From sequence record LR756504.1: DNA of 64,000 nucleotides. One strand, written 5' to 3'. Positions 693 through 61,992 of the stretch are shown one piece after another. Position 1 is the stretch's first letter. Each line of letters starts with the position of its first letter. Made by a program: the position numbers and the translations under genes. Below the pieces are notes generated by a model. The model saw only the letters and a program-made list of their open reading frames with translations. It had not been told where the DNA came from and searched no databases.

Positions 693-1121
693 TTATATTA
701 TATGATATTCTAAATAATTATGTTTCTCTATATACTCTTGTGGTGATTTATATTTTTCGGGGAAACCTTTCGACCTATCCCAACTTGGTTTTAGCATATC
801 TATTGCATACATAGCCCTAGCAATTGTTGGCTCATATGTAGAACCTAAACCAAAACCAGTTCCCCATTTAGATGATGGTTTATGTACAGATGCGAATCTG
901 AACTCACCATAACGATCATAATCAACTTTACCAATTTTATTATCCTTAGTAAATAAAAACCATGTCGATGGTTCTTCTGGTACTATAATATCAAATCCAT
1001 TTGATTTTAGCAGTTTTGCATATTGATTTAATGCTTCGGATGTAGAGTAAATTTCATCTTCCTCTTCTTCTTCCTCATCCCAATCTTCCGAGAAATCTTC
1101 AAACAATTTTAAGTATTTCAT
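693..1121 (-). CDS. Putative virion-internal protein (CTS-like N-terminus, acidic tract)
   Basis: Starts MKYLKLFEDFSEDWDEEEEEEDE; TTATATATA 4 nt upstream of ATG. Confidence 0.6.
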   Translation of the reverse strand: MKYLKLFEDFSEDWDEEEEEEDEIYSTSEALNQYAKLLKSNGFDIIVPEEPSTWFLFTKDNKIGKVDYDRYGEFRFASVHKPSSKWGTGFGLGSTYEPTIARAMYAIDMLKPSWDRSKGFPEKYKSPQEYIEKHNYLEYHII

Positions 1122-1124
1122 GAA

Positions 1125-1140
1125 CTATATATAATATATA
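1125..1140. promoter_or_regulatory. Back-to-back late-type promoter motifs (WWATATATA) for divergent genes 693..1121 and 1145..1699
   Basis: ctatatataatatata; each motif lies 4 nt from its ATG. Confidence 0.6.
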
Positions 1141-1144
1141 CTTT

Positions 1145-1699
1145 ATGAATTTCTACTCAAATTTCGATGATTTTCTATTAGAGAAAAATGGATTTACACA
1201 CAATGTATTATTATATAAATTAAATATTCCTGGATGGGAAAATATTATAAACAGTATTGATAAAGAAGATATTTGGAAAATAGAGAATACAGAATTACCT
1301 GGTATACCAGGTGGTTATCAATTGTATCCACATGTTACTTTATTGTATAATTTAAGAAATACAAATATAAACAAAATTGGTTCATTAATAAGCACCTTAG
1401 AACCTATTAAATTTGAAATTAATGGTATAAATATATTTAGAACATCTAAGGGATACGATGTATTAAAAATGTCTGTTAAACCAACCGAAGAACTTCTTTA
1501 TATACATCAAATATTTAAGGATATTTTTCATACAAATTCTAATGATGATTATACACCACATATTACAATAGCATACTTAAAAGAAGGTACTGCTCTAAAA
1601 TATGTTGATTATGAATATAAAAATATTATTTATTCCGATACTATCATATACAGTCTAAAAAGTGGTTATCAACTCGAATTTAAAATTGATGCTAAATAA
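1145..1699 (+). CDS. 2H phosphoesterase (2'-5' RNA ligase / Acb1-like fold) with CTS-like N-terminus
   Basis: Two HxT motifs: YPHVTLLY and TPHITIAYLKEG; N-terminus MNFYSNFDDFLLEK. Confidence 0.85.
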   Translation: MNFYSNFDDFLLEKNGFTHNVLLYKLNIPGWENIINSIDKEDIWKIENTELPGIPGGYQLYPHVTLLYNLRNTNINKIGSLISTLEPIKFEINGINIFRTSKGYDVLKMSVKPTEELLYIHQIFKDIFHTNSNDDYTPHITIAYLKEGTALKYVDYEYKNIIYSDTIIYSLKSGYQLEFKIDAK

Positions 1700-1704
1700 G
1701 TAGC

Positions 1705-3357: not shown

Positions 3358-3516
3358 ATGAAGAAATTTACTGACTACCAATTAGTTATAGAAAAAAAGG
3401 AAATAGAAAGAAAGAAATATTTAGAAGTAATTCACTTACCCGAATTATCAATAACAAAAGAATCACTTAATGAATACCTTAAACTATACAATCTAAAATT
3501 AGAAGAATTAAAATGA
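3358..3516 (+). CDS. Small protein with CTS-like N-terminus (not in ORF track)
   Basis: MKKFTDYQLVIEKKEIERKKYLEVIHLPELSITKESLNEYLKLYNLKLEELK*, ATGA overlap with 3513. Confidence 0.65.
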   Translation: MKKFTDYQLVIEKKEIERKKYLEVIHLPELSITKESLNEYLKLYNLKLEELK

Positions 3517-3731
3517 AATATTTAAAAACATTTGAGAATTACTATCACGATGTTCTGAATTATTATATCAAGAAGTCTGAAGTAGAAAAAGAGAAAGATG
3601 GTGGAGATGATAATGATGAAAATCTACCCGATGACTTACTCGATGATGATGAAATAGAAGTTAATGATGTAACTAAACCTTTAAAATATGATGTTAATAA
3701 TTCTATAAACATCTTTAACAATTTAATGTAA
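3513..3731 (+). CDS. Small acidic protein with CTS-like N-terminus
   Basis: MKYLKTFENY...; Asp-rich middle. Confidence 0.7.
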   Translation: MKYLKTFENYYHDVLNYYIKKSEVEKEKDGGDDNDENLPDDLLDDDEIEVNDVTKPLKYDVNNSINIFNNLM

Positions 3732-6058: not shown

Positions 6059-6152
6059 AATATTCTATATATCTTTGTGTATTATACCTCTATAACGCAA
6101 AAATATCAAAAATGTTATATCTTTAAAGAAAACATTTTAAATATATATCATT

Positions 6153-6479
6153 ATGATATTCAATTTCACCAAATTTAATGAATCAAATACTGAAAATAAT
6201 AAAATATATCCATGTTATTGTTTTGCTGTTTATGATGATGAAGCACCTAAAAACTTAGAAAATATTAAAAAATTATTAAAATCAATAGATGGTATTCGAA
6301 TAATATATAATCATTATAATGATGGTGAAATATACTTACACGTAATAATACAAGATAAAGATGATGAATATTTAAAAACATACGTAAAAGATACATTATA
6401 CAAATTAGATAAACTTGCAGTTAATTTTTATATGTATAGCGAAAATGATATAAAATTTTTAATTGGTCATGGAAAATAA
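6153..6479 (+). CDS. Hypothetical late protein, weak paralog of 6463..6750
   Basis: TAAATATATA 5 nt upstream; N-terminus MIFNFTKFNES. Confidence 0.75.
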   Translation: MIFNFTKFNESNTENNKIYPCYCFAVYDDEAPKNLENIKKLLKSIDGIRIIYNHYNDGEIYLHVIIQDKDDEYLKTYVKDTLYKLDKLAVNFYMYSENDIKFLIGHGK

Positions 6480-6751: not shown

Positions 6752-7273
6752 TTATTCAACCCCATATTTACCGTAGCAATATACTTTATATTTAGAAATA
6801 TTTGACTTAAGGCTATTTAAAATACTTTCAAAATTATCAAAAGTTATTCTATTATCAAAGAAACCAATTGTCTCTAAAAACTTATCATTTTCTTCCATAT
6901 CATCATCTGAATTTTCATCTGAATAAACATCTTCATTAATGTAGAATACTAAATTAACTTTAAGCTTTTTTAAAGCATGAAAAATATTAACTTCTAAAAC
7001 AGTATCAAATGCTCTACCGTCAAATTCTTTTGTAATTATGAAATATATCATAGTAGAATTATTACTATCTTTTACATAAACATGCTCATTGTTAAATTCT
7101 GGAATAGCTTTAAAAACCATAGATTTTATATACTTAGTATAATTTGCTACTTCTGGTTCAGGTTTTCCAAACATAAATCTGCTAAATTTCTTTGTTTTAG
7201 CCATATCCTTTATTTCCGAATCGGGCAACTTTGCCATATCAGAATAATCATAATATTCTTTTATATACTTCAT
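6752..7273 (-). CDS. Putative virion-internal protein (CTS-like N-terminus)
   Basis: MKYIKEYYDY; TAAATATATA 4 nt upstream. Confidence 0.6.
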   Translation of the reverse strand: MKYIKEYYDYSDMAKLPDSEIKDMAKTKKFSRFMFGKPEPEVANYTKYIKSMVFKAIPEFNNEHVYVKDSNNSTMIYFIITKEFDGRAFDTVLEVNIFHALKKLKVNLVFYINEDVYSDENSDDDMEENDKFLETIGFFDNRITFDNFESILNSLKSNISKYKVYCYGKYGVE

Positions 7274-14655: not shown

Positions 14656-14777
14656 TTTTTTATGATTAAATATCAATTTAACCCAAATATAATTAAAAAT
14701 ATGATAATATGCAAAATTTTATATAAAAATATTATTTAATCAAAAAAATAATACATTTTCAGAATTATATATAACTT

Positions 14778-15518
14778 ATGAAATATTTAAAGCTTTTTGA
14801 AGATTATTCTAACCCCATGTTAGAACAACGTAAAGATATGTTATCATTACGTAATAATTTAGATACTTATTTTAAAGAACATCATCCAGAATTAAAAATT
14901 ACGTTTGATATAAGAGGTGAATATCCAGAAGAATATTTAGGTGATTATATAGAAATTACTAGTGCAGATATTAAAATGACATTATCAACGACACATGAAG
15001 GTAAAATATTTGCTGATTATGGTGATGAAGATGATAGAGAAATATTTGATAAAACTGATGTTGATAATATAATATTTATGATAGAAGAACAATTTCGTGT
15101 TAATGAAAATGTTTCAGATTGGGACGATGAAGAGGAAGAGGAAGATGATTTAAGCATTATGTTTGAAACCATAGAATTAGATGATGATGCTATAGAATAT
15201 GGCTTTGAAAATGGTTATATATTTCACATTGGTAAAATCATAGATTATTTATCTAAACACGGTATAAATGGTGTACAAGTGAAAGATTTTAAAGGTAAAT
15301 CTATTGATACCGCTATGGGTGGGACTGACATTATTATTACAATTAAAATTCCAACTACAGATAAAGAAACTTTAATTAAAATAAAAAATGACTTGGAAAG
15401 ATTTGAATATTTTGAATCAGTAAAAATTACTAAAAATAGTATTAAAATATCGTATTCTGCGGATTCTATTTTGGTATATTTTCAACCTGAGATTTTTCTA
15501 AATGAACACGATTTATAA
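14778..15518 (+). CDS. Putative virion-internal protein, two modules
   Basis: MKYLKLFEDY; internal VNENVSDWDDEEEEEDDL; TTATATATA 4 nt upstream. Confidence 0.6.
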   Translation: MKYLKLFEDYSNPMLEQRKDMLSLRNNLDTYFKEHHPELKITFDIRGEYPEEYLGDYIEITSADIKMTLSTTHEGKIFADYGDEDDREIFDKTDVDNIIFMIEEQFRVNENVSDWDDEEEEEDDLSIMFETIELDDDAIEYGFENGYIFHIGKIIDYLSKHGINGVQVKDFKGKSIDTAMGGTDIIITIKIPTTDKETLIKIKNDLERFEYFESVKITKNSIKISYSADSILVYFQPEIFLNEHDL

Positions 15519-41451: not shown

Positions 41452-41455
41452 ATTA

Positions 41456-41816: not shown

Positions 41817-41942
41817 TTATTGGGTATTTGTTTGTAGATTTTCAATAATCTTTTTCAAATTTATACCATCTTCTTCCAAAAACAATATTCTTGCCTCTAA
41901 AATTTTAATTTTTCTAAGAATATTTAAAAGCTGTTGATTCAT
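41817..41942 (-). CDS. Small coiled-coil-like protein (not in ORF track)
   Basis: MNQQLLNILRKIKILEARILFLEEDGINLKKIIENLQTNTQ*. Confidence 0.5.
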   Translation of the reverse strand: MNQQLLNILRKIKILEARILFLEEDGINLKKIIENLQTNTQ

Positions 41943-41995
41943 TTCTAACTGAGAACTTTTCTTTCTTTTCATTCCATATATATTCGATTTATTAT

Positions 41996-42709: not shown

Positions 42710-42710
42710 A

Positions 42711-44384: not shown

Positions 44385-44393
44385 AAAATATCT

Positions 44394-48769: not shown

Positions 48770-50137
48770 ATGTCAAATATAATGTCTTTTGATGAACATA
48801 ATTCAATCAATGAAAATAGAGGTGTAGTACCTGGTATGGACTTTTTCGTTGAATTAGTTAAAAAAGAATTATTTCGTGTAAAGAAGGAAATAATCACTAT
48901 CAGGGATCAATATGCAAATAAAAGATTCAAAAAACCAGAAGATAGATTCAATGCTTGTATAAAAGCATTAGAAGAAAAAGTTATTAACGTACCCATAGTT
49001 ATTGACATTGAAAATCCACCCGCAGAATTCCCTTTACATAAATTAACTATAGTTTTTGATGAAGTAAGAGGTAGTGCCAAGGCTACATACAAAAAAGAAA
49101 GAACACACTTTGATGATGATGGTAGAATTATACAAGCTACTATAGGTTTAAAACTTGAAATTAAATTAGACAGTTTTAAAAATCCAATCGAAGTTAGAGA
49201 TTTAGCTTACTCAAGAGTTCCACACGAATTAACACATGTGTACCAACACTATAAGTGGAAGGATAAAGTTGACTATGAAAAAAATAGACAAGTTGCCAAA
49301 AAAGAATTTGGTAGAGTTGCTATTTGGAATAAACAAGCCGCCGATAAAAAAGGAGTAACTAAATCAGAGAAGAATGATAGTGAAGCAAGACAATTTTTAA
49401 CTAACTATATTTCTAAAGCTATTTACTATTTCAGTGAAAAAGAAATTGGTGCTAAAGTTACCCAGACTTACTATGAACTGCTAAAAGAAAAAGCAATTAA
49501 ACCTTCGAAAGATCCAAAAACAGGCTCTATTAATCAAAAAGATTTAATGGACAAACTTAAAAAGACTACTCACTGGGAGTCTTTACAAGCATATATCTTT
49601 AATTTGGATACTCTGTATGATTTAATTAAACACGGACATACTGTTGTTATGATTGAAGATGGTAAACGAGTTAAAATGAAATTCACCGATGATGACTTAA
49701 AAGGAATTCTTCAAGATGTTGATAGAGCTATTGATGCACAAGAAGAGAAAGAAGAAAAAGCTATCAATAAGAGAAAAGTTGATGTTCCTAATCGTCCCAT
49801 AATTCCTAAAGTTGATAAGAGAGAAGAAATTTTCAGTAAATATAATTTAAATACCGAAAATCCAAGAAGTATATTCTTAAAACTTCTTAAATATTTCGAT
49901 GAACAGATTGAATCATTTAGAAGAAGGATACTACGACTATCAGTTGAACTACCAATAGAGTATACAGATACTAAGAAAGTTGTTAAAAAGGGTATTAAAA
50001 AAACAGATAAGCCTAATGAAGAAGACGAAGAACAAAAAGCAAAAGAAGAAGAAATAATCGAAGCTGAAATTGAACAACAAGAACCCGTTGAACCAATAGA
50101 AACAGAGGATGAAAATAAAGAAGATAAAGAAGAATAA
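48770..50137 (+). CDS. Putative zincin metalloprotease with CTS-like N-terminus
   Basis: VPHELTHVYQH (HExxH); N-terminus MSNIMSFDEHNSINE; acidic tail. Confidence 0.6.
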   Translation: MSNIMSFDEHNSINENRGVVPGMDFFVELVKKELFRVKKEIITIRDQYANKRFKKPEDRFNACIKALEEKVINVPIVIDIENPPAEFPLHKLTIVFDEVRGSAKATYKKERTHFDDDGRIIQATIGLKLEIKLDSFKNPIEVRDLAYSRVPHELTHVYQHYKWKDKVDYEKNRQVAKKEFGRVAIWNKQAADKKGVTKSEKNDSEARQFLTNYISKAIYYFSEKEIGAKVTQTYYELLKEKAIKPSKDPKTGSINQKDLMDKLKKTTHWESLQAYIFNLDTLYDLIKHGHTVVMIEDGKRVKMKFTDDDLKGILQDVDRAIDAQEEKEEKAINKRKVDVPNRPIIPKVDKREEIFSKYNLNTENPRSIFLKLLKYFDEQIESFRRRILRLSVELPIEYTDTKKVVKKGIKKTDKPNEEDEEQKAKEEEIIEAEIEQQEPVEPIETEDENKEDKEE

Positions 50138-50166: not shown

Positions 50167-52068
50167 TTAATCATAATCATGATAATCTTCTTCTGGTATT
50201 TTAGCAGAATTCTCTATACCTATCGTTTTTAACTCTACTTCATAACCCCATAGATATTCTAAATATTTTAAAGTTTTATTTTTCATATCTTCATGTAATG
50301 GTAAATTATTATGGGATTCATAAACCAATTTAAGTTTTCTATCACCTAATAAATCTACCGAGTCAACTTGTATATCAGGAAAATGTTGACTCCAATTATA
50401 TGTAGATGCTAATTTTTCTCTAATTTCTCTATAACCTCTATCATTATGAATCCTCTTAACCATATAATTTTTTTCCTCAGAATCATCAAGCAAATAAAAC
50501 ATTTTGAAATCTCTTATTACTTTGGGTGATAAGAATTGTAATATAAATGTTTCATCTTTATAATTTTTTATTATATCATGGAATACATCTAACCAATCTT
50601 TACCAACTATATCAGGAAACCATTCTCTGTCTTCATCAGTAGGCTCTTGACATATTCTTTTAATATCCATTAACATAGCAAACCCAAGTGCATAAGGATT
50701 GAAACCTGAATAGTATGGTGAATTAAATTCTGGTTGGAATACTACAGAAGTATGTGATGCTAAGAATTCTAACATAAATCCATCATCTACTAATCCTTCA
50801 TCAAACATTTTATTTAAAATATGATAGTGTACAAATGTTGCACAATTATGATTTATAAATGGACCAGATTGATATTTATGTGAATTAGTTACACTAAAAT
50901 CATATGTAGTACCATAATCTTCTTCAATAGAAATTATTTCATCTTCACATTTCTCACCATCTATAATAACATCAACAATATTACTAATTACCAAATTTAA
51001 CAATTCAACCCAATTAGAATTTATTAAAATTTTATGATTTTCACCACCATGTAAAGTATATCCATTCTTGGTTTTTATTTTAATTCTTTTTTTATTTTCA
51101 TGTTTAAACCAATCATATATAACTTCCCATTTTTCACCATCCCATACTTTACCACTATATTTATTGTCTACAATGTATTTAATATCTATTAGTCCATCTT
51201 CAGTTGATATTAAAGAACCTTCTACTAAACAGCCTTCATTTAAAACTTTTGTAGAAATTTGGGGCATAAAATATTGAGACAACTTTCTTGTTATTCTTAT
51301 CAATTCTCTTTTCCATGTTTCTAATCTCGGTGCGTATTTTTCTACAAAGTATAGAATATTTTCTTCTCTTTGCACAGGGAATTTATATTCTTTAATGGTA
51401 TCTTTCTTTTTAATAGGCGCAGTCATTTCCATTAAGTAATCATAAAGCTTATCATTTTCTTCACTTACTTTATTATTAAATTCTGCTTTACTAGTTTTTG
51501 ATTTATATGTTCTTTTATATTTATCTACACCCCAATATTGTAAAGCATGACAAGCATCTAAAACTACTTCAACTTCTTTTTCTCCATATTTTTGTTCACA
51601 TTCTTTTATGTAATTCTTAGCAAAACTTAAATAATCTACAATAGAAGAAGCATCTGTCCACTCTTTAAACATATAATTATTTTTAAATAAATGGTTATGT
51701 CCCATAGCAGCGTGAGCAATTACTAATGTAGTCATACACGCAGTATTATCTTCCATATTAAAAGATATACATGGGTTTGTATTTAGAACTATTTCGTAAG
51801 CAAGTCCCATAGTACCTTTCTTATACTTATTCATATTAATAAGATAATCTTTGCCGAATTTCCAGTGATTATACATAATAGGTAATCCATGTGATGCGTA
51901 AGCATCAATCATTTGGTCAGCAGAAATAATCTCGATTTGATTCGGATAAATATCTAACTTCAAATAATCTTTACCAATTCTTTCGATTTCGTTATAGACA
52001 TCATCTATGAATTCGAATGTCCATACATTGTCTGTAGGAATGATATTACTTTTTTTCTTCTTGTTCAT
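50167..52068 (-). CDS. spoVR: SpoVR/YcgB-family protein containing an intein
   Basis: YPNQIEIIS, GLAYEIVLN, LVIAHAAMGHNHLFKNN, TKVLNEG|CATFVH, NPYALGF, YKDETFILQFLSP. Confidence 0.93.
   Translation of the reverse strand: MNKKKKSNIIPTDNVWTFEFIDDVYNEIERIGKDYLKLDIYPNQIEIISADQMIDAYASHGLPIMYNHWKFGKDYLINMNKYKKGTMGLAYEIVLNTNPCISFNMEDNTACMTTLVIAHAAMGHNHLFKNNYMFKEWTDASSIVDYLSFAKNYIKECEQKYGEKEVEVVLDACHALQYWGVDKYKRTYKSKTSKAEFNNKVSEENDKLYDYLMEMTAPIKKKDTIKEYKFPVQREENILYFVEKYAPRLETWKRELIRITRKLSQYFMPQISTKVLNEGCLVEGSLISTEDGLIDIKYIVDNKYSGKVWDGEKWEVIYDWFKHENKKRIKIKTKNGYTLHGGENHKILINSNWVELLNLVISNIVDVIIDGEKCEDEIISIEEDYGTTYDFSVTNSHKYQSGPFINHNCATFVHYHILNKMFDEGLVDDGFMLEFLASHTSVVFQPEFNSPYYSGFNPYALGFAMLMDIKRICQEPTDEDREWFPDIVGKDWLDVFHDIIKNYKDETFILQFLSPKVIRDFKMFYLLDDSEEKNYMVKRIHNDRGYREIREKLASTYNWSQHFPDIQVDSVDLLGDRKLKLVYESHNNLPLHEDMKNKTLKYLEYLWGYEVELKTIGIENSAKIPEEDYHDYD
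50845..51231 (-). mobile_element. 129-aa mini-intein (no homing endonuclease)
   Basis: Block A CLVEGSLI, block B GENH, block F TYDFSV, block G INHN/C. Confidence 0.92.
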
Positions 52069-52345
52069 ATACAATTTCTTTTATTTTCTTTTTAGTTACT
52101 TTATGTGGATTGCTTTTATTTCTATCAGATATAATAAGATTAGATAAATATATGAAGTCTATTATTGAGACTCCCCAACATAAATAAATGAACCAAATAG
52201 GAATTCCATGTTCAACTTTCGCAAATGTCATTATTGATATGAAAGGTGCTAATGACATAAATATGTATATACATATAGTTATAATACCATATAACAATTG
52301 AAATGGTTTTACTATAAGCATATTGTATAATTTTTTAAACATCAT
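52046..52345 (-). CDS. Small 2-TM membrane protein
   Basis: Hydrophobic segments; ATGA-coupled to the methyltransferase. Confidence 0.7.
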   Translation of the reverse strand: MMFKKLYNMLIVKPFQLLYGIITICIYIFMSLAPFISIMTFAKVEHGIPIWFIYLCWGVSIIDFIYLSNLIISDRNKSNPHKVTKKKIKEIVYEQEEKK

Positions 52346-53136
52346 ACCTTTCCATATTTTTTTAATCTTTCTGTAATTATTTCACAATACTCTACAGATA
52401 ACTCAGATCCTATATAATTTCTATTATTAAGTAATGCTACTTTAGCTGTAGTACCACTACCACTAAAAGGATCATAAACAACATCACCATCGTTTGACCA
52501 TGATAATATATGATCTTTTGCAAGTTCTTCTGGGAAAATAGCAGGATGTCCAAATGCTATATCATCCTTTGTTGAATACCCTTTACCAGTATTATACTTC
52601 CAAATATTATTTCTTGGAGAAAAATCAGGAATTGGTTTCATATCTCTTTCAATCAATTCACCATTTTTATTTCTAACTTTTGCTTTTCCAAAACTTGTCC
52701 ACCCAGCCCATCTATTGGGTTTATCACAAATAAGTTTTGCTTTATTTGGTTTACCTTTGCTAAATACAAACATATATTCGAATATTTGAGAATATCTATT
52801 ACCATCTCTTCTAGCAGGAAATGATGTACCATTTTTTTCATATATCATAGTATCGTGTAAATTAAACCCACATTCCATAAAATATAATGCTTGTTTAAAT
52901 GATGTACCAGTTTCACTTCCTTTTACTACAGCATCACCAACTACCCATACTACGCAACCACCTGGTTTAGTAACTCTATATAATTCTTTTGCTATAGGTT
53001 CGAAATCAAATGAGTATCCTAAATATGATCTTAAATCATCGTAAGGAGGAGAAGTAACTGTTAAATCAATAAAGTTATCTTCCATCTTAGTCATAGTATC
53101 TAAACAATTCTCATTGTAAATCTTATTTAAATCCAT
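52342..53136 (-). CDS. DNA amino-methyltransferase (beta class, N4-mC/N6-mA)
   Basis: Motif IV VTSPPY, HPAIFP, motif I YDPFSGSGTT. Confidence 0.93.
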   Translation of the reverse strand: MDLNKIYNENCLDTMTKMEDNFIDLTVTSPPYDDLRSYLGYSFDFEPIAKELYRVTKPGGCVVWVVGDAVVKGSETGTSFKQALYFMECGFNLHDTMIYEKNGTSFPARRDGNRYSQIFEYMFVFSKGKPNKAKLICDKPNRWAGWTSFGKAKVRNKNGELIERDMKPIPDFSPRNNIWKYNTGKGYSTKDDIAFGHPAIFPEELAKDHILSWSNDGDVVYDPFSGSGTTAKVALLNNRNYIGSELSVEYCEIITERLKKYGKV

Positions 53137-53141
53137 TTTAA

Positions 53142-53966
53142 TTATTCACTTTTAGTTTTTATTAAATTTTCTCTAAAAGTTTTAATTTTAACATTAGATA
53201 AATAGCAATATTCTGGATTAATTTCAAAACCAATATATTTTCTATTCAACTCTATACAAGCAATTGCTGTAGTACCACTTCCCATGAATGGGTCCAATAT
53301 AACATCATCAACTTTAGATGTAGTTTCAATTAAAGGCTTTATTAAAGATAATGGAAATGATGCTTGATGCTCACCAAATGCATGTACACTTGTTCGTATT
53401 ACATCTCTATGATTTCCCAACTTTTTAGCAAGTGGTAAATCAAAATAATATTTTCTTGATTTAACAAAATGAAATATATGTTCGTAAACAGGATACCTTC
53501 TATCGGCTGAGTGTACTGGTATAGGATTTGATTTTTCCCAAATTAATTTGTTTCTTAAAATCCAACCTTGTTCTTGCATACCTATAGCAACACGTTCAGG
53601 TATCATTAAAAGCTGTTTATGTTGAAGCCATTTACCATCTTGTTTCGCTATCTTATGTTCTTTATAATGTTCATCAGTTTTTCTTTTATACTTTCCAGTA
53701 TTTCTTGAAAATCCTTTTGTTCCAAAATATACATCACCTATATTTAAATAAAAACTACCATCTTTAGCTAACACTCTTTTTAATTTTTCTGTATATGTTA
53801 GAAAATTTTCAACATATTCTTTTGGGTGAATTTCTCTACCAACAGTTTCATTACCATATACTCTACAATTAAAATATGGCGGTGATGTAATAATTAGATT
53901 AATACTATTATCTTCTAATTTATCCATTAGTTCAAAACAATCCCCACAAGTAATAGTATTTATCAT
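53142..53966 (-). CDS. Second DNA amino-methyltransferase (start revised to MINTITCGD)
   Basis: ITSPPY, HQASFP, LDPFMGSGTT. Confidence 0.93.
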   Translation of the reverse strand: MINTITCGDCFELMDKLEDNSINLIITSPPYFNCRVYGNETVGREIHPKEYVENFLTYTEKLKRVLAKDGSFYLNIGDVYFGTKGFSRNTGKYKRKTDEHYKEHKIAKQDGKWLQHKQLLMIPERVAIGMQEQGWILRNKLIWEKSNPIPVHSADRRYPVYEHIFHFVKSRKYYFDLPLAKKLGNHRDVIRTSVHAFGEHQASFPLSLIKPLIETTSKVDDVILDPFMGSGTTAIACIELNRKYIGFEINPEYCYLSNVKIKTFRENLIKTKSE

Positions 53967-53967
53967 A

Positions 53968-55284
53968 TTAGTTTGTAATTGGTACTTTTTTCTCAAATAA
54001 TTTTTTAAACACTGTCCATATTTCATTTATTTCTTTTATGGATTTCATTGCTAAATTTGGATTCTCTGTGGCGACTGGTCTATATGCTTTCCATAAATCT
54101 GATTTAATTTTAGTAAAACCATTATTAGGAATTTCTATATATGCCATATATTGTAATAAAGGCATCATAGTATTTAATAATTCCGCTGATGCTTTAGCAT
54201 CAGATTTATCCCACACATCACCATCAGATGCTTGACAAACATAAACGTTCCATTCAGATGAGAATCTTTCTTGCATTATTTTTATAGCTAATTCTAATGC
54301 TGGTTTAATTTTAGTACCGCCATTTTCTTTAGAATTAAAGAATGCTTCTTCATTTACTTCTTTAGCTTCTGTATGATGTTGAATGAATACTATTTCAACA
54401 TTAGGATATTGTTTTGATAAAAATAAATACAATAATGTAAAAAATCTTCTAGCAATATCTTTTTCTTTTTTACCCATTGAACCAGAAATATCCATAATAC
54501 AAAACATTACTGCTTGTGTGTTAGGTACAGGCTTAGGTTCAAAATTCTTATATGATAAATCTTTATCATCTAAATATGGAATTGATTTTAACTGCTTTTC
54601 AGTATTTTCAATCTCTAACATTAAATAATTTATTCTATCTGAATCAGTATTACTTTTTAATAATTCTGATTCCAATTCCTGTTTTAATTTTTTTAATTTC
54701 TCTTCAATAGAAACTTGCATCCCTATTCTTCTAGCTAAAGAATTCTTATAAGATTTAACCATATCCATAGAAGAGAATGGTCCATCAGTTTTAAAACCGT
54801 GTCTCTTATATTTTTTAGCATCTTCACTCATTAAATACTTTTTTGCTAAATCTGGAAGTTCTAAATCATCAAAAAAGTAATTTAAAAATTCATCCTTCGA
54901 AATAGAAATTATAAATTCATCTTCACCCACACTTGGGTCATTAGAACCCTTTCCTTTACCACTTCCTTTTCCTCCTGATGAGGGTGGTTTAGGTATTTGA
55001 TCACCTTCTACGAATTTTGATGTTTTAACTTCAGCTGGATTACCTGGAAGAATTCTATGCTTAGTTCCTTTAGAATTATCATAAACAAATGTAGGTTCTT
55101 CTATACCTTTAATTGGTACTTTAATAGAACCATTATTATTAATATCTTTAATTGATTGATTATTTAATACATTAGGAATGTTATTCTTAATTTGTTCTTC
55201 AACACGTTTTAAGAATTTATTTCTATTTGTTATTGATTTCCCCTTGCTATTAAGCCTTCTGTCGATTATAAAACTTCTAGACAT
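53968..55284 (-). CDS. yeaH: YeaH/YhbH (DUF444) vWA-domain protein
   Basis: IDRRLNSKGKS, ISKDEFLNYFFDDLELPDL, MFCIMDISGSM, QHHTEAKEV, QASDGD. Confidence 0.93.
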   Translation of the reverse strand: MSRSFIIDRRLNSKGKSITNRNKFLKRVEEQIKNNIPNVLNNQSIKDINNNGSIKVPIKGIEEPTFVYDNSKGTKHRILPGNPAEVKTSKFVEGDQIPKPPSSGGKGSGKGKGSNDPSVGEDEFIISISKDEFLNYFFDDLELPDLAKKYLMSEDAKKYKRHGFKTDGPFSSMDMVKSYKNSLARRIGMQVSIEEKLKKLKQELESELLKSNTDSDRINYLMLEIENTEKQLKSIPYLDDKDLSYKNFEPKPVPNTQAVMFCIMDISGSMGKKEKDIARRFFTLLYLFLSKQYPNVEIVFIQHHTEAKEVNEEAFFNSKENGGTKIKPALELAIKIMQERFSSEWNVYVCQASDGDVWDKSDAKASAELLNTMMPLLQYMAYIEIPNNGFTKIKSDLWKAYRPVATENPNLAMKSIKEINEIWTVFKKLFEKKVPITN

Positions 55285-55510
55285 GTTTATCTACTTTTAT
55301 CGTTTATTATTTTAACAAAAAATAGATTAAAGTTTTAAAATTTTTTGAAGAATTTAATAATGGATTTATAATACACTTTAAAAAATGCAAGTACTCTGAT
55401 TAAAGTATATAGTTTGAAGCGTTTAACTAAAATACCTAACGTAACCAATATAAGAAATATACCAAACATAATGATAGTTTCATAAAGATTTACTATATAT
55501 ATTTAAAAAA

Positions 55511-55536
55511 ATAAAGGAAGTTTTAACTTCCTTTAT
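55511..55536. terminator. Intrinsic terminator
   Basis: ataaaggaagtt-tt-aacttcctttat. Confidence 0.8.
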
Positions 55537-55538
55537 AA

Positions 55539-56144
55539 TTATTTTATTTTTTTAAATAAAAAATTCAATCTTTCTAATAATTCTCTCACTGGCTCAGTTT
55601 CTATAGTTACAGTAGGTTCAGATGTCGCAAGTATGGTATCTAATTGCTTTAATTTTTGGTTAATTTCCGACTTTACCTGATTAACTCTGTTTCTGTCAGA
55701 ATTTGTATTATTTTCAACTTTAGAATTTGATGGAATTCTCAATGTTATTTTTTCTTGTAATTTCAACATTTCACTAAAAGACATTACATGCTTTCTTTCG
55801 GACATTTCCATTTCTTCGTCAATATCATAATCATCTATATCAGATGGTTGTTCAATTATAGAAAGAATTTCTTCTTCGACATCTTTTCTCATATTCATGA
55901 TTCTATCATAATCAGGACTACTTTTTGATGGAGTAGTTTCAGAAGAAGCATATTTTTCCCATTCACCAATAAGTTCTTCTAATTTTAACTCTTGTGATGG
56001 TTCTATTTCAGTTAATAACGATGGTTTTGATACAACAAAATTATGAAGAGCATTATTTACTCTTCTCAGTAAATCGGCAGATTCTTTAACTAAACCTGTT
56101 TTTTTGACATTCTTTTTCATCTCTAATATAGAATTATATTTCAC
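55539..56144 (-). CDS. Hypothetical late protein (true start may be ATG 56120)
   Basis: TAATATATA abuts the GTG; internal KHVMSFSEMLKLQEK resembles the CTS-like motif. Confidence 0.7.
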   Translation of the reverse strand: MKYNSILEMKKNVKKTGLVKESADLLRRVNNALHNFVVSKPSLLTEIEPSQELKLEELIGEWEKYASSETTPSKSSPDYDRIMNMRKDVEEEILSIIEQPSDIDDYDIDEEMEMSERKHVMSFSEMLKLQEKITLRIPSNSKVENNTNSDRNRVNQVKSEINQKLKQLDTILATSEPTVTIETEPVRELLERLNFLFKKIK

Positions 56145-56165
56145 TATATATTAAAATAAAAAAAA

Positions 56166-56555
56166 TCACTTATTTCGCTTCTGTCTATTTGTGTCCATAT
56201 CTTCCTTTAACTGTCTATTTTTATCCACCGCCTTAGAAAAAAGTTCTGCTCCTACAAAATCTTTCCATAAAACATCAGAATTTGACATAAATGGATTAAT
56301 AATACTACCACCTGAAAATGATACTACATCAACCTCAACTTTATCATAACCCAATTCTGGTAATTTACCTGCTACAAATTCTATCCACCCAGGCATTCCA
56401 ACCCAATGACATTCACCATCAATGTATTCTTCACCATAATGTTTAATTAAATAGTTAACATCATTTTCAAAATCTTCTTTCGATTTTGTGTCATGTTGAA
56501 ATTGATAATATTGGTAATCATCCCAATATTCGTATTCTAATGTAAATATTCTCAT
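56166..56555 (-). CDS. Hypothetical protein
   Basis: 129-aa ORF; TATAAT 5 nt upstream. Confidence 0.75.
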   Translation of the reverse strand: MRIFTLEYEYWDDYQYYQFQHDTKSKEDFENDVNYLIKHYGEEYIDGECHWVGMPGWIEFVAGKLPELGYDKVEVDVVSFSGGSIINPFMSNSDVLWKDFVGAELFSKAVDKNRQLKEDMDTNRQKRNK

Positions 56556-56593
56556 AATTTATTATAGAAAAATTAAAAGTTTTAAAATAAAAT

Positions 56594-56626
56594 AAAAAAG
56601 GTGAACCTTTTAAAGTCCACCTTTTT
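56594..56626 (-). terminator. Terminator after prkA
   Basis: Minus strand AAAAAGGTGGAC...GTTCACCTTTTTT. Confidence 0.75.
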
Positions 56627-56651
56627 ACCTGTCAAACAAAAAATAAATAAA

Positions 56652-58589
56652 TTAACTCAAATCATGTTTATAAACTCTTACATACCATTCAACTATTAAT
56701 TGAATCTGTCTCTTAGTATATCCCAAGTTTTCCATTCTTGATATGAAGCTTTCGTGTTTCTTCTTATCATCAGTGCTATTTTTAGGTGAGAAAGAAATAA
56801 CAGGTAGCAAATCTTCTGTATTAGTGAAAATTCTCTTTTCTATAACAGTTCTTATTTTTTCAAAAGCATTCCATTTTGGAGATTTACCACTATTATTTGC
56901 TCTATATCTGTATGTAAAATTAACAGTTTCATGTCTGAAATCTTTAGGATTTACAATACCTGCTGGTTTCTCCATTTTCTCTAATTCCGAATTAAGAGTT
57001 TCTCTATTCATCATAGCATTAGTTTCAGGATCTCTAAAATCATTATCTTGAATCCAATTATCAGCATAAGCAACATATCTTTCAAATAGATTTTGACCAT
57101 AATCAGAATAAGATTCAACATAAGCTCTTTGAATTTCATTACCAATATATTGAACGTAATCAGAAACAATATGTGTTTTTAGATAATCTAAATATTTACC
57201 TTCTACTTCTTTTGCTAATTGTAATTTTTGCACTTCTTTTTCCAACACATAAAATAAATGAATTGGGTTAGCAGAAATTTCATGTTGATCATAATTAAAT
57301 ACTTTAGATAGAACTTTATAAGCAAAACGTGTTGATAAACCATTCATACCTTCATTCAAACCTGCATAATCTTTATATTCTTGTAATGATTTTGCTTTTG
57401 GATCTTTATCTTTTAAATTCTCACCATTATATACTCTAAGCTTAGAAAAAATATTCGAATTCTCAGGCTCAACCAAACGAGTCATGATAATAAACTTAGC
57501 AAGTAAATCAAGTGTCTTTGGTGCGCAAGACGCTTTTGATAATGATGAGTGTGCCAAAATCTTTTCGTAAATTTTTACTTCTTCATCAACACGTGAACAA
57601 TATGGTACTCTTACTACGTTAATACGATCTAAGAAAGCTTCATTCTTCTTATCTCTTACAAAGAGCTCCCATTCTGACTCATTCGAATGGGCCATGATAA
57701 TACCCTGGTATGGAATTGCGGGTAGCCCTTCAGTTCCTTTAAAATTTCCTTCTTGTGTTGCAGTTAATAATGGATGTAACGTTTTAATTGGAGCTTTAAA
57801 CATCTCAACAAACTCTAAGATTCCTTGGTTTGCTCTACACAAGCCGCCAGAATATGAATAGCAATCAGGATCATCTTGACTGAAATGTGCAAGTTTTCTA
57901 ATATCTACTTTACCAACAAGAGATGATATATCAGAATTGTTTTCATCACCTGGTTCTACTTTTGCTATTCCAACTTGATGTTGAATACTTGGATACATTT
58001 CAATTACTTTTATTTTAGATAAATCATAATCAATTTCATCTAATCTTTTAGTAAGCCACGGAGACATACAAGATGGAATATATCTTTTATTAATTCCGTA
58101 TTCATCCAATAACATTTTAGAATCTTCATCTGATGAGAAAATACCAAATGGTGATTCAAATACAGGTGATGTTTCTTCACCAACTTTAACCACATAAATA
58201 GGACATTTTTCCATCAAGCTTTTTATTTTCTCAGCTAAAGAAGATTTACCACCACCAACTGGACCCAAAAGATATAGAACTTGTTTCTTTTCTTCCAGGC
58301 CTTGTGAAGCATGTCTAAAGAAACCAACAATTTGTTCTATAGTATCTTCCATACCATAAAATTCTCTAAAAGCTGGATATCTTTTGATAATTTTATTGAA
58401 GAATAATCTAGATAATCTAGGATCATCTTTGGTATCTATAGTTTCTTCACTACCTATTGCTTCCAATAACCTCTCAGCAGGAAGCGAATACCATTTGTCT
58501 GATTTCTTACACAAGTCCAAATATTCTAGCAATGAAAATTCTTTTGGTACATGTAAGTGACGATTTTTGTAGTCTTTTAGTATTGACAT
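56652..58589 (-). CDS. prkA: PrkA/YeaG-family AAA+ ATPase
   Basis: Walker A GPVGGGKS, YSYSGGLCRANQGILEFVEMFKAP, C-terminal DLLPVISF...RMENLGYT. Confidence 0.96.
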   Translation of the reverse strand: MSILKDYKNRHLHVPKEFSLLEYLDLCKKSDKWYSLPAERLLEAIGSEETIDTKDDPRLSRLFFNKIIKRYPAFREFYGMEDTIEQIVGFFRHASQGLEEKKQVLYLLGPVGGGKSSLAEKIKSLMEKCPIYVVKVGEETSPVFESPFGIFSSDEDSKMLLDEYGINKRYIPSCMSPWLTKRLDEIDYDLSKIKVIEMYPSIQHQVGIAKVEPGDENNSDISSLVGKVDIRKLAHFSQDDPDCYSYSGGLCRANQGILEFVEMFKAPIKTLHPLLTATQEGNFKGTEGLPAIPYQGIIMAHSNESEWELFVRDKKNEAFLDRINVVRVPYCSRVDEEVKIYEKILAHSSLSKASCAPKTLDLLAKFIIMTRLVEPENSNIFSKLRVYNGENLKDKDPKAKSLQEYKDYAGLNEGMNGLSTRFAYKVLSKVFNYDQHEISANPIHLFYVLEKEVQKLQLAKEVEGKYLDYLKTHIVSDYVQYIGNEIQRAYVESYSDYGQNLFERYVAYADNWIQDNDFRDPETNAMMNRETLNSELEKMEKPAGIVNPKDFRHETVNFTYRYRANNSGKSPKWNAFEKIRTVIEKRIFTNTEDLLPVISFSPKNSTDDKKKHESFISRMENLGYTKRQIQLIVEWYVRVYKHDLS

Positions 58590-58696
58590 AATTAAATCTT
58601 TAAATATTTTTTGTTTGCACTTTTACTTTTATTAAAAAAAGTGAAAATGTTTGAAAAATATGTATTAAAAAATTAAGTTTTCCTAATATATACTAT

Positions 58697-59095
58697 ATGA
58701 AAAATATACAAAGTTTTAAAGAATTCTTAAACGAAAGTATTCAATTCGATGATATTGAATCTATTTTACGTAAAACTGCGAATGGAACTAAGATTATAAT
58801 AACAAAACATAATGAAGATAAAGACAGGGTTGTATATTATCGTGGATTTAGAAATGGTAAACATTGGGCTAATTATTCACCACAATTTAAACCATATCAA
58901 AATGATATTGTGATATTTCCTAGTAAACAAGTAAATATCATAGAAATAAATAAAAATTATGTGGAGACGAAAGGAGAGTTCAAAGATAGAATTGAAATTA
59001 TGAAAGAACTCGATATTGAAAAAAAGAATAAAGAAAAAGAACAAATATATAGAGATGCTTATCTACATTCTAAAAAGTATCCAAATGTTGACTAA
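58697..59095 (+). CDS. Putative virion-internal protein (CTS-like N-terminus)
   Basis: MKNIQSFKEFLNES; TAATATATA (58684-58692) 4 nt upstream. Confidence 0.65.
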   Translation: MKNIQSFKEFLNESIQFDDIESILRKTANGTKIIITKHNEDKDRVVYYRGFRNGKHWANYSPQFKPYQNDIVIFPSKQVNIIEINKNYVETKGEFKDRIEIMKELDIEKKNKEKEQIYRDAYLHSKKYPNVD

Positions 59096-59141
59096 AAATA
59101 TTACTACACGTTTAATATATACAAAAAACATTAACTAAATA

Positions 59142-59426
59142 ATGAAATATTTAAAGAAATATAACACTTTTTTAAATGAAAATAAAAGTGAGTCTAAAAT
59201 CGAAGATGTACTAAGTCTTCAGAAAAGTATACATACTAATAAATATCATACTTACTCTAAAGATGAATTGTGTAATATGGGCGAAAAAGAGTTGGATGAT
59301 ATAATATTAGATTTAAAGGCTGTTGTAGCATCAATAGGAGAAGAAGATAGTAATTTCATACAAAGTCCATACAATCCAAATTTACCATCAGAAATAGCAT
59401 CAGGTAAAATAGAAAATGGACTGTAG
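59142..59426 (+). CDS. Putative virion-internal protein (CTS-like N-terminus)
   Basis: MKYLKKYNTFLNEN; TAATATATA at 59113-59121. Confidence 0.65.
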   Translation: MKYLKKYNTFLNENKSESKIEDVLSLQKSIHTNKYHTYSKDELCNMGEKELDDIILDLKAVVASIGEEDSNFIQSPYNPNLPSEIASGKIENGL

Positions 59427-59448
59427 TCTATAAAAAATAACTCTTTTT

Positions 59449-61992
59449 GTGAAAAGAATAAAATCGTTTAGAGATTACAATTTGCTTTTAGAAAAATTGA
59501 AATTAAGTGAAGTTAGAAACTTAGTTAAAAATTGGAAAGAGGCTGGTGGTGATAAAAGATATGATGAAATATTTAAAGGTAAGCATAGAATACTTATCCC
59601 ATTCCAACCTATGGTATCACCTATTCAAATACAAGTACTTAAATTTTTAAAGGAACATGGATATGTGGATATTGATTATATTGAAGGTAATTGTAAAGAT
59701 TCTAAAAACCCAAATCAACAACCAAAAATTAGCAAGATTTTAGCAAGATTTAATCCAGAATTAAAATCTAAATATGATAATGATAGAGAAAAAGCTAAAC
59801 GCGCACAAGGAGATTTAACTATAGTTGTATCTAGACATGCTTATGATATTGCATCAATGACCACTGATAGAAAGTGGCATAATACATCATGTATGGAGTT
59901 TAGAACAGGTTCTAATAGAACTTACGTCACTAATGATGTTATGGAAGGCTCTTTAGTAACATATTTAATTAATAAGTCAGATAAAAATATTGAACATCCT
60001 TTAGCTAGACTTCTAATAAAACCATTCGTTAGTACTGATGATGGTAAAGTTATTTTATGGACAGAAGATAGAATATATGGTGATAATGTTAATGGATATA
60101 AAGAAAGTGTTGAAAAATGGCTAAGAAATATTCAACCAAATATTGTCGGTAATTTTAGACTTCATCATAAACTTTATTCTGATAGTAGTACTGATAGAAC
60201 TTTCTATCAATGGTTTAATGATTATGATGATGTGTATAAAAATACCTATAATGATATATTTTTTGTATATAAAGATGGTAAATGTGGCATGGTTAATAAA
60301 TATAATGATATTATAATACCATTAATATATGATAATATCATTGAAACCATATACGGTGGTACTATAATGATATGTATAAAAGACGGTAAGTATGGATTAA
60401 TTAATAATAGAGGTGAAATAATTTTAGAATGTGATTATGATAGTATTGATATTCCTAACGATAGTTATGATTATCTTATTCTTTTAAAGAAAAATAGAAA
60501 ATATGGATTTATTAAATTAAATGGTAATGGTAATGGTAATATATTACTTAAAACAGAACCAATGTATGAATTCTTAGAATACATAACAGGTACTAAGTAT
60601 TTAATATTCAGAGATAATGGTAAATATGGTATAATCAATATGAATAACACTATATTACTACCACCTACTTATGATAAAATTTCAAAAAATTATTCATTTA
60701 AAATTGGTGATAAAATTGGTTTATTAGATAGAGATACATTTAAGAGTGAAGTAATTATAGATTCTTCTATAGCCGATGAAATTAAATATAAATGGGGTGA
60801 TGATTTCGCAATTCAAAAAAATGAAAAAATTGGATTAATATCCGCTGATGGTAAAATTCTTATTCCTTGTGAGTATAATAAATTCGCAAATTATAGAGAT
60901 ATTAATAATGGTATTGTTATAGTTTTAAAAGATGATATGTATGGAATTTATTCTTGTAACGATATGAAAGAATTATTACCGTGTGAGTATATAAACATAA
61001 CTGATAGTAAAAATAATACATTCCTTATTCAAAATAGTTCCGAGAAATGGGGAGTATTCACTAACTATAAAATAATTGTACCATGTAAATATACATCATT
61101 GGATATGAGAAATTATCCTATGGCACAAGCATATCTAAGTACTACGGATAATGAACAGACTATAAATGTATTAACTGGTAAAATTGCTAATATTAAAATT
61201 CAAAATATAATAAACAATGATGCTGTTATATTTACTAATTCTAATAATACTGAAAATAAATATGGCGTTTGTAATAAAAACTTAGATATTATAATTCCTG
61301 ATAAATGGTATTACATTCAATATTTTCAATCATTCGCATCAATTTATGATAAACCATGTTTCAAAGTTTATAAAACTGATGATACATTCGGTATAATGAC
61401 TATCGATAATGAATTCATATTACCATGTGAATACAGTCAAATACTAAAAATAACAAATGGTGTTTTTTCACTTAAAAATTCTACTAGTAAGAAATGTAAA
61501 TTAATTAAATTACCAAGTTGTGAAACTATTTTAGATTATAAATTTGATTCTATCAGAGGTAATGGTAATGATAGCGAAAAGATATTTATAGTTGGTGAAA
61601 ATAATAAATATTCATTATTTAATACTGAAACAAAAGAAATAACAAATAAATATGATGATATATCATTATTTTTAAATGATAAAGCATCTTTTTATAAAGG
61701 AATAACGTATAGCAATATAGAATATGTGAAATTATTAATGTTTAAAAATAATAAATTTATAGAATCTATAAACACTTATCAACATATACAACCTTTATCA
61801 GTTAGAAACAATAGAATTGTATTTGTATTTTGTTTTACAACTGATAAAATTGCATTGAGAGATATTTACGATAATGAAGGTAATCTATTATTTAAAAATT
61901 GTTTTGATATTCAAGTTAATGATAATTTTATAACAATTAAACAAAACGAAGGAGATGAACCAATTCAATATAAAATTGATGATTTATTATAA
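59449..61992 (+). CDS. WG-repeat protein with CTS-like N-terminus and an unassigned N-terminal domain
   Basis: GTG start MKRIKSFRDYNLLLEK; more than 8 K(Y/W/C/I)G(L/I/V)...G.II.P..Y..I repeats. Confidence 0.8.
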   Translation: MKRIKSFRDYNLLLEKLKLSEVRNLVKNWKEAGGDKRYDEIFKGKHRILIPFQPMVSPIQIQVLKFLKEHGYVDIDYIEGNCKDSKNPNQQPKISKILARFNPELKSKYDNDREKAKRAQGDLTIVVSRHAYDIASMTTDRKWHNTSCMEFRTGSNRTYVTNDVMEGSLVTYLINKSDKNIEHPLARLLIKPFVSTDDGKVILWTEDRIYGDNVNGYKESVEKWLRNIQPNIVGNFRLHHKLYSDSSTDRTFYQWFNDYDDVYKNTYNDIFFVYKDGKCGMVNKYNDIIIPLIYDNIIETIYGGTIMICIKDGKYGLINNRGEIILECDYDSIDIPNDSYDYLILLKKNRKYGFIKLNGNGNGNILLKTEPMYEFLEYITGTKYLIFRDNGKYGIINMNNTILLPPTYDKISKNYSFKIGDKIGLLDRDTFKSEVIIDSSIADEIKYKWGDDFAIQKNEKIGLISADGKILIPCEYNKFANYRDINNGIVIVLKDDMYGIYSCNDMKELLPCEYINITDSKNNTFLIQNSSEKWGVFTNYKIIVPCKYTSLDMRNYPMAQAYLSTTDNEQTINVLTGKIANIKIQNIINNDAVIFTNSNNTENKYGVCNKNLDIIIPDKWYYIQYFQSFASIYDKPCFKVYKTDDTFGIMTIDNEFILPCEYSQILKITNGVFSLKNSTSKKCKLIKLPSCETILDYKFDSIRGNGNDSEKIFIVGENNKYSLFNTETKEITNKYDDISLFLNDKASFYKGITYSNIEYVKLLMFKNNKFIESINTYQHIQPLSVRNNRIVFVFCFTTDKIALRDIYDNEGNLLFKNCFDIQVNDNFITIKQNEGDEPIQYKIDDLL

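Follow-up and report, generated by a model that had tools for sequence, protein, structure and literature searches.

The internal proteins IPI, IPII and IPIII of bacteriophage T4 carry a capsid-targeting sequence that the gp21 prohead protease removes; IPII and IPIII begin with the peptide MKTYQEFIAE, and relatives begin with MKTYQEFITE/S (here and below, a slash follows the Glu of a putative cleavage site). Proteases of the gp21 type cut after L/I-x-E, and in the IPIII tag residues 4 and 7 direct targeting while residues 8 and 10 direct processing (PMC9026906). In phiKZ, 201phi2-1 and SPN3US, a targeting role has been proposed for the propeptides of head and ejection proteins (PMC5694885). 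Here we describe an N-terminal tag of comparable design in LR756504.1, the genome of an uncultured phage, where a peptide of the type MKYLKLFEDFLNES would be the counterpart of the 10-residue T4 tag. This genome is among the four largest of Al-Shayeb et al. 2020 and belongs to the Mahaphage clade, whose hosts were predicted to be Bacteroidetes (PMC7162821). The window analyzed is a stretch of 64 kb, bases 62,001-126,000 of this 636,363-bp record, which is without annotation; positions below are those of the window unless given as record positions. The GC content of the genome is about 25%. An alternative genetic code was considered and found unneeded, as code 11 places 74% of the genome in open reading frames (ORFs) of at least 150 aa. 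An original prediction, made from the letters of the window, held that about 12 late genes carry a T4-like capsid-targeting tag and form a probable set of injected cargo proteins.

The tag of LR756504.1 is strictly N-terminal, is under selection at the peptide level, is modular and is coupled to a late-type motif. It is a segment of 8-13 residues with the consensus M-K-[YH]-[LI]-K-x-[FY]-E-[DN]-[FY]-[LI]-N-E. The tag was tested genome-wide, on 845 genes called de novo across the whole record. A gapped profile built from the genome's own tags, with a threshold of at least 12 bits, recognized 53 of the 845 N-termini and none of 2,276 windows beginning at an internal Met. An ungapped matrix under leave-one-out scoring (at least 10 bits) recognized 46 N-termini but no internal Met among 2,809, and of the 167,995 internal positions scored only 11 reached the threshold; the plain pattern M-[KRN]-x-[LIFVM]-[KRQ]-x-[FY] also matches 46 N-termini. 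Synonymous codons within the tag are as variable as the genome average or more: Lys2 is encoded 31 times by AAA and 13 times by AAG and Lys5 32 and 12 times (genome average 85/15), Phe7 27 times by TTT and seven times by TTC (genome average 78/22), and Ile4 uses ATT, ATA and ATC. In the peptide, position 4 alternates between L, I and F, and position 7 between F and Y. Because the synonymous sites vary freely, selection acts on the peptide and not on the nucleotides.

The tag forms a modular extension, about 13-22 residues long, and paralogues and orthologues that lack it begin at the point where it stops. When the 58 tagged proteins with at least 10 bits in the profile were freed of their first 20 residues and compared by BLAST, they fell into 54 clusters. 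In three paralogue families, residues 1-9 of the untagged members align with residues 21-23 of the tagged ones. Residue 23 of the tagged member at record position 600190 (MKYYHKYENFFKESIENQENRG-FDFKKTF…) aligns with residue 1 of five untagged paralogues (MDFKKTF…), residue 21 of the tagged members at record positions 299414 and 480998 aligns with residue 6 of a dozen untagged paralogues, and residue 21 of the WG-repeat protein of the window aligns with residue 9 of an untagged paralogue at record position 434526. Two orthologue sets, those of a 2H phosphoesterase and of an HExxH protein, have the extension in some members and lack it in others. At least 14 large paralogues (450-770 aa; record positions 154616, 257772, 482901, 419499, 158014 and others) make up a family that contains members with and without the MKYLK tag, and other members bear a different extension of about 18 residues ending in LLQEKE, LVEEKE or MISEKE, which may be a second tag class.

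The tag closes in (L/I/F)-x-E, with typical endings LFE/D, LFE/K, LNE/S and INE/A, so that the cleavage-type end expected by the original prediction is present. Glu8 is found in 42% and Glu13 in 29% of the tags, compared to 6-7% in untagged proteins, and a search of residues 6-22 found [LIFVM][NFLQ]E in 60% of the tagged proteins, compared to 11% of the untagged ones (p = 3e-15). The same type of motif fills a protein encoded elsewhere in the genome. The head genes lie outside the window, at record 183-191 kb, where queries with T4 proteins found the terminase (4.5e-44), the portal (1.4e-31), the capsid protein (3.6e-5) and the protease (0.003), and also the sheath; the corresponding Pfam matches include Gp23 (8e-26) and Portal_T4 (2e-65). 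A gp21-like protease is fused to a scaffold-like region in a single protein of 712 residues (record 185342-187480, minus strand), which was recognized by Pfam and by alignment to T4 gp21. Its protease domain (residues 28-141) matches Peptidase_S80 (2.8e-5, 23.9 bits, cut-off 23.4) and, below the cut-off of 27, S77 (8.8e-5, 22.5 bits). The sequences GEFDHP and VSSRAAG align with GELNHP and VSSRGLG of gp21, and thus the motifs of the catalytic His and Ser are kept; a phmmer search of the protease against PDB sequences did not match T4 gp21. The machinery that a T4-type tag requires is present in the genome: the gp21-family protease with both motifs, the Gp20 portal and the Gp23 capsid protein.

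The scaffold region, which makes up the C-terminal two thirds of the fusion protein, contains eleven 14-residue repeats Y-S-E-Y-[ILV]-A-E-x-L-D-K-x-I-x and several LNES/LNEN sites. It has 35 [LIV]xE sites, 2.7 times the density in the proteome, and the protein holds 11 of the 17 occurrences of Y[LIV]AE in the proteome and is the richest of all proteins in [LIV]NE[SAGN]. The core motif [FY]xx[FY][LIVM]xE is present in 84 copies where 35 are expected, and the excess consists of 21 copies that start at residues 5-10 of proteins together with the 11 scaffold repeats. The second half of the tag resembles a single scaffold repeat, and each closes with the L/I-x-E that gp21-type proteases cut. The YSEYIAE repeats and the LNES sites of the scaffold thus correspond to the end of the tag, and likewise to YQEFIAE of T4. 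Three DUF7487 genes are found among the head and tail genes (record 163745-165586, 187572-189248 and 192855-194807), one of them also with a restriction-endonuclease-like domain and one on the opposite strand between protease and portal; they look like mobile genes of the homing type.

A TATATA motif, in its extended form TAATATATA, stands before tagged and structural genes. Genome-wide it takes two preferred distances, ending 3-8 nt before the ATG (75 genes) or 14-28 nt before it (129 genes), the second type with an A-rich leader between TATATA and ATG. The 3-8 nt spacing, in which the ATG is often 4-5 nt downstream, implies that these mRNAs would be leaderless, and no Shine-Dalgarno sequence is present at the leaderless-type tagged genes examined. 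According to the original prediction most of the 12 genes are preceded by WWATATATA, and this was borne out: nine have their own TATATA, which ends 3-8 nt before the ATG in eight and 14-28 nt before it in gene 59142, and the other three lie in operons behind one. Examples of the leaderless type are at 1122-1144, 6135-6152 and 14760-14777.

When a motif before either the gene or its operon is counted, all but two of the 53 tagged genes (51) have one, while among the 792 untagged genes the number is 305 (odds ratio 41, p = 4e-18), and the co-occurrence proposed earlier as a check was thus found. For the leaderless type alone, 20 of 75 such genes are tagged and 26 of 770 others (odds ratio 10, p = 7e-11). 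The other 55 leaderless-type genes begin with unrelated peptides, and 29 of the 53 tagged genes do not belong to the leaderless type. At the capsid, protease-scaffold, portal and sheath genes the motif is of the 14-28 nt type, and the terminase is in an operon with the 3-8 nt type. The motif is absent from the genes of the clamp loader, the flap exonuclease, a Rad50-like protein, PrkA/DUF444/SpoVR and the CCA enzyme. These distributions support the view that TAATATATA behaves as a late promoter and that the tagged genes are probably late. The T4 late promoter TATAAATA has no positional peak before genes of LR756504.1, and the late-type motif would work like a late promoter while differing from the T4 sequence. 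Tagged genes also cluster, with 8 adjacent pairs where 3.3 are expected (p = 0.01).

All 12 N-terminal peptides listed in the original prediction are encoded where it placed them, although some gene starts had to be revised. Two of the genes are on the minus strand, and the positions given for them, 693 and 6752, mark their low ends, the real starts being 1121 and 7273; the ATG at 3358 lies inside an ORF that begins with TTG at 3349; and the peptide at 59449 is present but starts with GTG. The figure of about 12 tagged genes was upheld in part. Eight genes are strong members (17.6-27.0 bits) and two weak ones, 1145 (5.8 bits) and 48770 (4.9 bits), are backed by orthologues, but 3358 (4.5 bits) and 6153 (4.2 bits) are indistinguishable from chance, about half of the matches at the scores of these four being expected by chance.

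The first strong gene (693-1121, minus strand, 27.0 bits) encodes a protein of 142 aa that begins MKYLKLFE/DF, followed by an acidic run (SEDWDEEEEEEDE); its tag is encoded at about 1083-1121, its TATATA ends 5 nt before the ATG, and a homologue search found only the protein itself. It is separated from the 2H phosphoesterase gene (1145-1699, plus strand) by a spacer of 23 bp, GAACTATATATAATATATACTTT (1122-1144), where two divergent late-type TATATA motifs can be read from the sequence. Each faces outward and ends 4-5 nt from its ATG, the leaderless-type spacing, and would serve the gene on its side. Next come a doubtful member of 52 aa (MKKFTDYQLVIE/K; 3358-3516, plus strand), at chance level and with a marginal gene-call score (8.4), which has no TATATA of its own, its operon having one, and an acidic tagged protein of 72 aa (MKYLKTFENY…; 3513-3731, plus strand, 23.0 bits) in an operon behind TATATA. 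The second doubtful member (MIFNFTKFNE/S, 108 aa; 6153-6479, plus strand) has a leaderless-type TATATA, and its F-x-x-F-N-E-S is without the hydrophobic residue before N. Further strong genes encode proteins of 173 aa (MKYIKEYYDY…; 6752-7273, minus strand, 19.6 bits, TATATA ending 4 nt before the ATG), 246 aa (MKYLKLFE/DYSNPMLE/Q; 14778-15518, plus strand, 25.5 bits), which has no significant Pfam or PHROG family, and 142 aa (MKYFRTFELF…; 24699-25127, plus strand, 20.1 bits), the last two with leaderless-type TATATA.

Three strong genes follow one another on the plus strand near the end of the window. The first (58697-59095, 132 aa, 17.6 bits, leaderless-type TATATA) has a full-length tag, MKNIQSFKEFLNE/S, with the core FKEFLNE at residues 7-13. 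The second (59142-59426, 94 aa, MKYLKKYNTFLNE/N, 24.0 bits), with its TATATA 14-28 nt upstream, has a tagged paralogue at record position 310092. The third (59449-61992, 847 aa, 18.1 bits) starts with GTG, is tagged (M)KRIKSFRDYNLLLE/K and lies in the operon behind the TATATA of 59142. Its Pfam match to WG_beta_rep (2.7e-18) agrees with the earlier mention of a WG-repeat protein among the tagged set.

The enzyme at 1145-1699 (184 aa) carries a 14-residue extension, MNFYSNFDDFLLE/K, with the core F-D-D-F-L-L-E (F-x-x-F-L-x-E) at residues 7-13. Its assignment as a 2H phosphoesterase was confirmed by Pfam, with 2_5_RNA_ligase2 (1.4e-10, 41.8 bits) and Acb1 (6.5e-7, 29.6 bits) both above the curated cut-off of 27, and both H-x-T/S motifs are present (HVTLLY and HITIAY). 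Four orthologues have comparable extensions of 13-17 residues (MKLKKYKQFIKES, MIKKYLEFMKES, MKRVVTYSDFMKILE and MRFKNFDDFVFENE), and the orthologue of a 484-kb phage with 39% GC has none. In an AlphaFold model (pTM 0.73) residues 1-18 have pLDDT below 50, and the first strand starts from residue 20. Foldseek matched this model to 2H phosphodiesterases (E = 1e-5 to 4e-4), including the poxvirus cGAMP phosphodiesterase and phage Acb1, and also to the RNA-end-processing enzymes Usb1 and LigT. The protein may be an Acb1-like, putative counter-defence enzyme, its modeled fold being like that of viral cGAMP phosphodiesterases.

The second weak member supported by orthologues (48770-50137, plus strand, 455 aa, leaderless-type TATATA) was described as an HExxH protease. 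Its HELTH motif is invariant in seven sequences, but the protein belongs to no Pfam or PHROG family. Its extension, MSNIMSFDEHNSINE/N, ends in INE, as in orthologues P0007 and P0010, and the related extension of P0011 ends in TSE; the extended orthologues begin MSNIMSFDQHNSINE/S, MLNNLKTFDQYGKINE/K and MLNNLNSYEYHTSE/S, and two others begin just before the conserved VPGMDF.

Genome-wide, the recognizable tagged proteins are the 2H phosphoesterase, an SLT lytic transglycosylase, a PG_binding_1 protein, an AAA ATPase and the WG-repeat protein, and most of the others are ORFans in Pfam and PHROG scans. A tagged SLT transglycosylase and a tagged peptidoglycan-binding protein would be plausible cargo. 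None of the 53 tagged proteins has a segment resembling a membrane helix, compared to 56 of 792 untagged ones. Seven tagged proteins have an acidic run directly after the tag, compared to 2 of 792 untagged. This acidic subgroup (693-1121 and 3513-3731 in the window; record positions 47163, 312206, 330120, 603575 and 614951) begins with MKYLKL[FY]E[DN]F, then 10-20 Asp/Glu, often as …SEDWDDEEE…, and its members could act in DNA mimicry or in charge balancing inside the head.

We consider it likely that the tag is a prohead-targeting propeptide of the T4 type, cut by the head protease and greatly expanded in number. Synthesis of the proteins would be late and, for about half of them, would start from transcripts that look leaderless. 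The amphipathic N-terminal segment would dock each protein on the prohead scaffolding core by resembling the Y-S-E-Y-I-A-E repeat; the scaffold-fused gp21-like protease would then cleave behind the Glu of (L/I/F)-x-E, which is residue 8, 11 or 13, and the folded cargo would be trapped in the head together with the DNA. The further reading, in which the full set is injected as effectors, is more tentative and in our judgment falls a little short of probable. With similar reserve we suggest that the tag was copied from the scaffold repeat and serves as a portable address label, which reveals a packaged and injected protein set (more than 50 per genome, including counter-defence and cell-wall enzymes) and is shared across a large, mostly uncultured T4-type clade probably infecting Bacteroidota. 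The interpretation of the original prediction is the best supported one, and each computational test applied to it gave a positive result.

Several observations weigh against it. We infer core binding, cleavage, retention in the virion and injection from anatomy and statistics. The T4 peptide MKTYQEFIAE scores 5-7.7 bits with the tag profile (E = 0.2-1.4 for 845 sequences), a 10-residue peptide being too short for significance. Twelve of 52 tags (ungapped matrix, at least 8 bits) have no [LIFVM]xE in the scanned region, and the cargo bodies are not clearly depleted of cleavage-type motifs, as [LIV]xE is at 0.86 of expectation (p = 0.03) and more specific motifs are undepleted. Tagged proteins are slightly acidic (median pI 5.8, compared to 6.3), unlike the basic internal proteins of T4. 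A Rad50-like ATPase that reaches at least 10 bits in the profile is a false positive, its N-terminus belonging to its domain. No tags were found in PTm1 (95 kb) and Lak-A1 (50 kb), and none or few in a 735-kb phage (50 kb), so that the tag is not universal in the clade. In Sphingomonas phage PAU, the tagged proteins gp142 and gp154 are labeled 'internal capsid protein' in NC_019521, and the basis of this label could not be found.

The tag might also target proteins to the prohead and be cut there while its bearers are accessories of the core or scaffold, or structural material of the head interior (counter-ions or an inner body, for example), and not host effectors. The PAU scaffold protein is itself tagged, and most tagged proteins of LR756504.1 are ORFans without an enzyme domain. 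The acidic internal peptides of T4 derive from core proteins, and the seven tagged proteins that begin with long acidic runs recall them. However, the 2H phosphodiesterase, the SLT transglycosylase and the PG_binding_1 protein make sense only in or on a host cell, and the cargo bodies lack the multiple repeated cleavage sites typical of scaffold. We regard this alternative as unlikely.

Explanations that give the peptide no role in the head seem far less probable still. A nucleotide-level element, promoter-proximal or proper to leaderless mRNAs, was suspected at first because TATATA lies 4-5 nt from the ATG, without a Shine-Dalgarno sequence, in many tagged genes; it was ruled out by the codon counts and by the 55 leaderless-type genes with unrelated N-termini. 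The related idea that the conserved N-terminus is a feature of transcription or translation which aids expression of leaderless late mRNAs could account for the enrichment of the tag at genes with TATATA at 3-8 nt and for the lack of Shine-Dalgarno sequences, but third-codon positions are free while amino-acid classes are kept, 29 of 53 tagged genes are not of this type, and the conservation reaches residue 13 and ends in a protease-type motif common to the scaffold; we find it very improbable. Recombinational shuffling of cassettes has been proposed for the internal-protein locus of T-even phages, and the clustering of the tagged genes and the joint travel of promoter and tag would suit shared 5' ends that are leftovers of such shuffling or of duplication, the peptide having no present function. 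Yet nucleotide conservation is no greater than the amino acids require, orthologues change sequence and keep the design, and the tag class is kept across genomes with portals only about 50% identical and contigs of 22-41% GC, which makes this origin hardly more credible. Composition could be suspected as well, since a genome of 25% GC favors K, Y, L, F, N, I and E, Lys is usual after the start Met and shows a 2-3 fold enrichment at positions 2-6 when all N-termini are considered, and the four weak window members score at chance level. For the strong members chance was refuted by the internal-Met counts (53 against 0 of 2,276), the internal-position counts (46 against 11 of 167,995) and the promoter co-occurrence, and we give it practically no weight. 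A prohead-targeting propeptide remains our preferred explanation.

Other genes of the window are mentioned here for completeness. Five large ORFan genes (550-1,180 aa) are found at 27478-41360 on the plus strand, and the large genes of 27478-45638 gave nothing in Pfam or PHROG beyond one weak PHROG match, of unknown function, to one of the five. Because the first three carry the late motif, they are probably virion proteins of the tail or fibres. A tRNA nucleotidyltransferase, the CCA-adding enzyme (45707-46867, plus strand, PHROG 5e-63), and a complete PrkA/DUF444 (YeaH)/SpoVR trio (50167-58589, minus strand, Pfam 1e-142 to 5e-161) have no late motif. The trio constitutes an operon of the bacterial stress or sporulation type, with two small genes (52046-53136) between SpoVR and DUF444.

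The tag pattern is also found beyond this genome. A search of IMG/VR with a degenerate DNA pattern for M-K-[YH]-Φ-K-x-[FY]-E-[DN]-[FY] gave at least 120 matching DNA stretches. Of the 129 unique matches listed, 118 coincide with the first ATG of an ORF, leaderless TATATA is present in 18%, compared to 1.06% of random ATGs, and residues 11-13, which the pattern leaves unconstrained, include Asn12 in 29% and Glu13 in 39%; 18 of 120 of these stretches have a capsid, portal, terminase or sheath gene of Maha/T4 type within about 5 kb. Neighboring Mahaphages have dense runs of tags around the 2H orthologue. Literature searches for the literal tag strings found none and no paper linking capsid targeting to megaphages, and a 2026 review of jumbo phages leaves a capsid-targeting tag in megaphages unmentioned.

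Most genes of huge phages are without known function, and if the tag marks head cargo, about 6% of the genes would gain a location and a time, namely the virion and injection. It would also provide a rule, based on sequence only, for finding pre-packaged counter-defence proteins in metagenomes, a rule that has already pointed to an enzyme like Acb1, to a lytic transglycosylase and to many ORFans that evolve fast. The suggested origin of the tag is imitation of a scaffold repeat that was already cut by the head protease. Finally, the tag may offer a short label for loading foreign proteins into capsids beyond the system of T4 and E. coli.

In comparison with T4, the likeness is that proteins with nothing else in common share a short peptide at their very N-terminus, in which aromatic residues at i and i+3 are followed by a hydrophobic residue and by Glu at i+6. 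In the profile alignment MKTYQEFIAE falls on tag positions 4-13, so that Y4, F7, I8 and E10 of T4 correspond to F7, F10, L11 and E13 of the tag. T4-type portal, capsid protein and gp21-like protease are present in both, and the tagged genes are clustered and variable. A tblastn search with an artificial double tag returned only internal-protein genes of T-even phages (E = 2-6, partly in non-coding sequence), which serves as a pointer only; the likeness is one of shared design, and homology is not demonstrated. The Mahaphage tag has 13 residues instead of 10, starts with the prefix MK[YH][LI]K and in many cases has a Glu site at both E8 and E13, and short tags have L-F-E8 in place of the core ending at E13. 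There are about 50 or more tagged genes per genome (about 6% of genes in LR756504.1) instead of a handful, driven by TAATATATA, often 4-5 nt from the ATG. Their products are mostly acidic or neutral and not basic, the protease is fused to the scaffold, and the tag resembles the scaffold's own repeat. The fusion itself recurs in the PTm1 homologue, annotated 'prohead core scaffolding protein and protease', whose scaffold is rich in [LIV]xE[SGNA].

Phage PAU, a cultured relative, is the third-closest by portal, after the Lak and Tenacibaculum phages, and thus belongs to the same clade. Among 88 ORFs in the 50 kb around its head genes, 16 begin with MKT[LI][ST]xL[YF]E, often followed by KLNE/[AS], and the set includes the scaffold gp152 as well as gp142 and gp154; no paper describing this tag was found in the literature. 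The design MK-x-[LI]-x-x-Φ-Φ-E then KLNE/[AS] and the many tagged genes are shared features. The PAU tag differs in having T/S at position 5, L at 7 and Glu at 9, and is not detected by the Mahaphage profile, and in PAU the protease and the scaffold are separate genes. The phages phiKZ, 201phi2-1 and SPN3US also have dozens of head-internal proteins that are cut after Glu by gp21-related proteases (gp175/gp245-type), and Peptidase_S80 is the best Pfam match of the Mahaphage protease. Their propeptides are mostly longer than 100 residues, without a common N-terminal consensus, and are cut at S/A/G-x-E, while the Mahaphage tag is short, shared by its bearers and ends in L/I/F-x-E.

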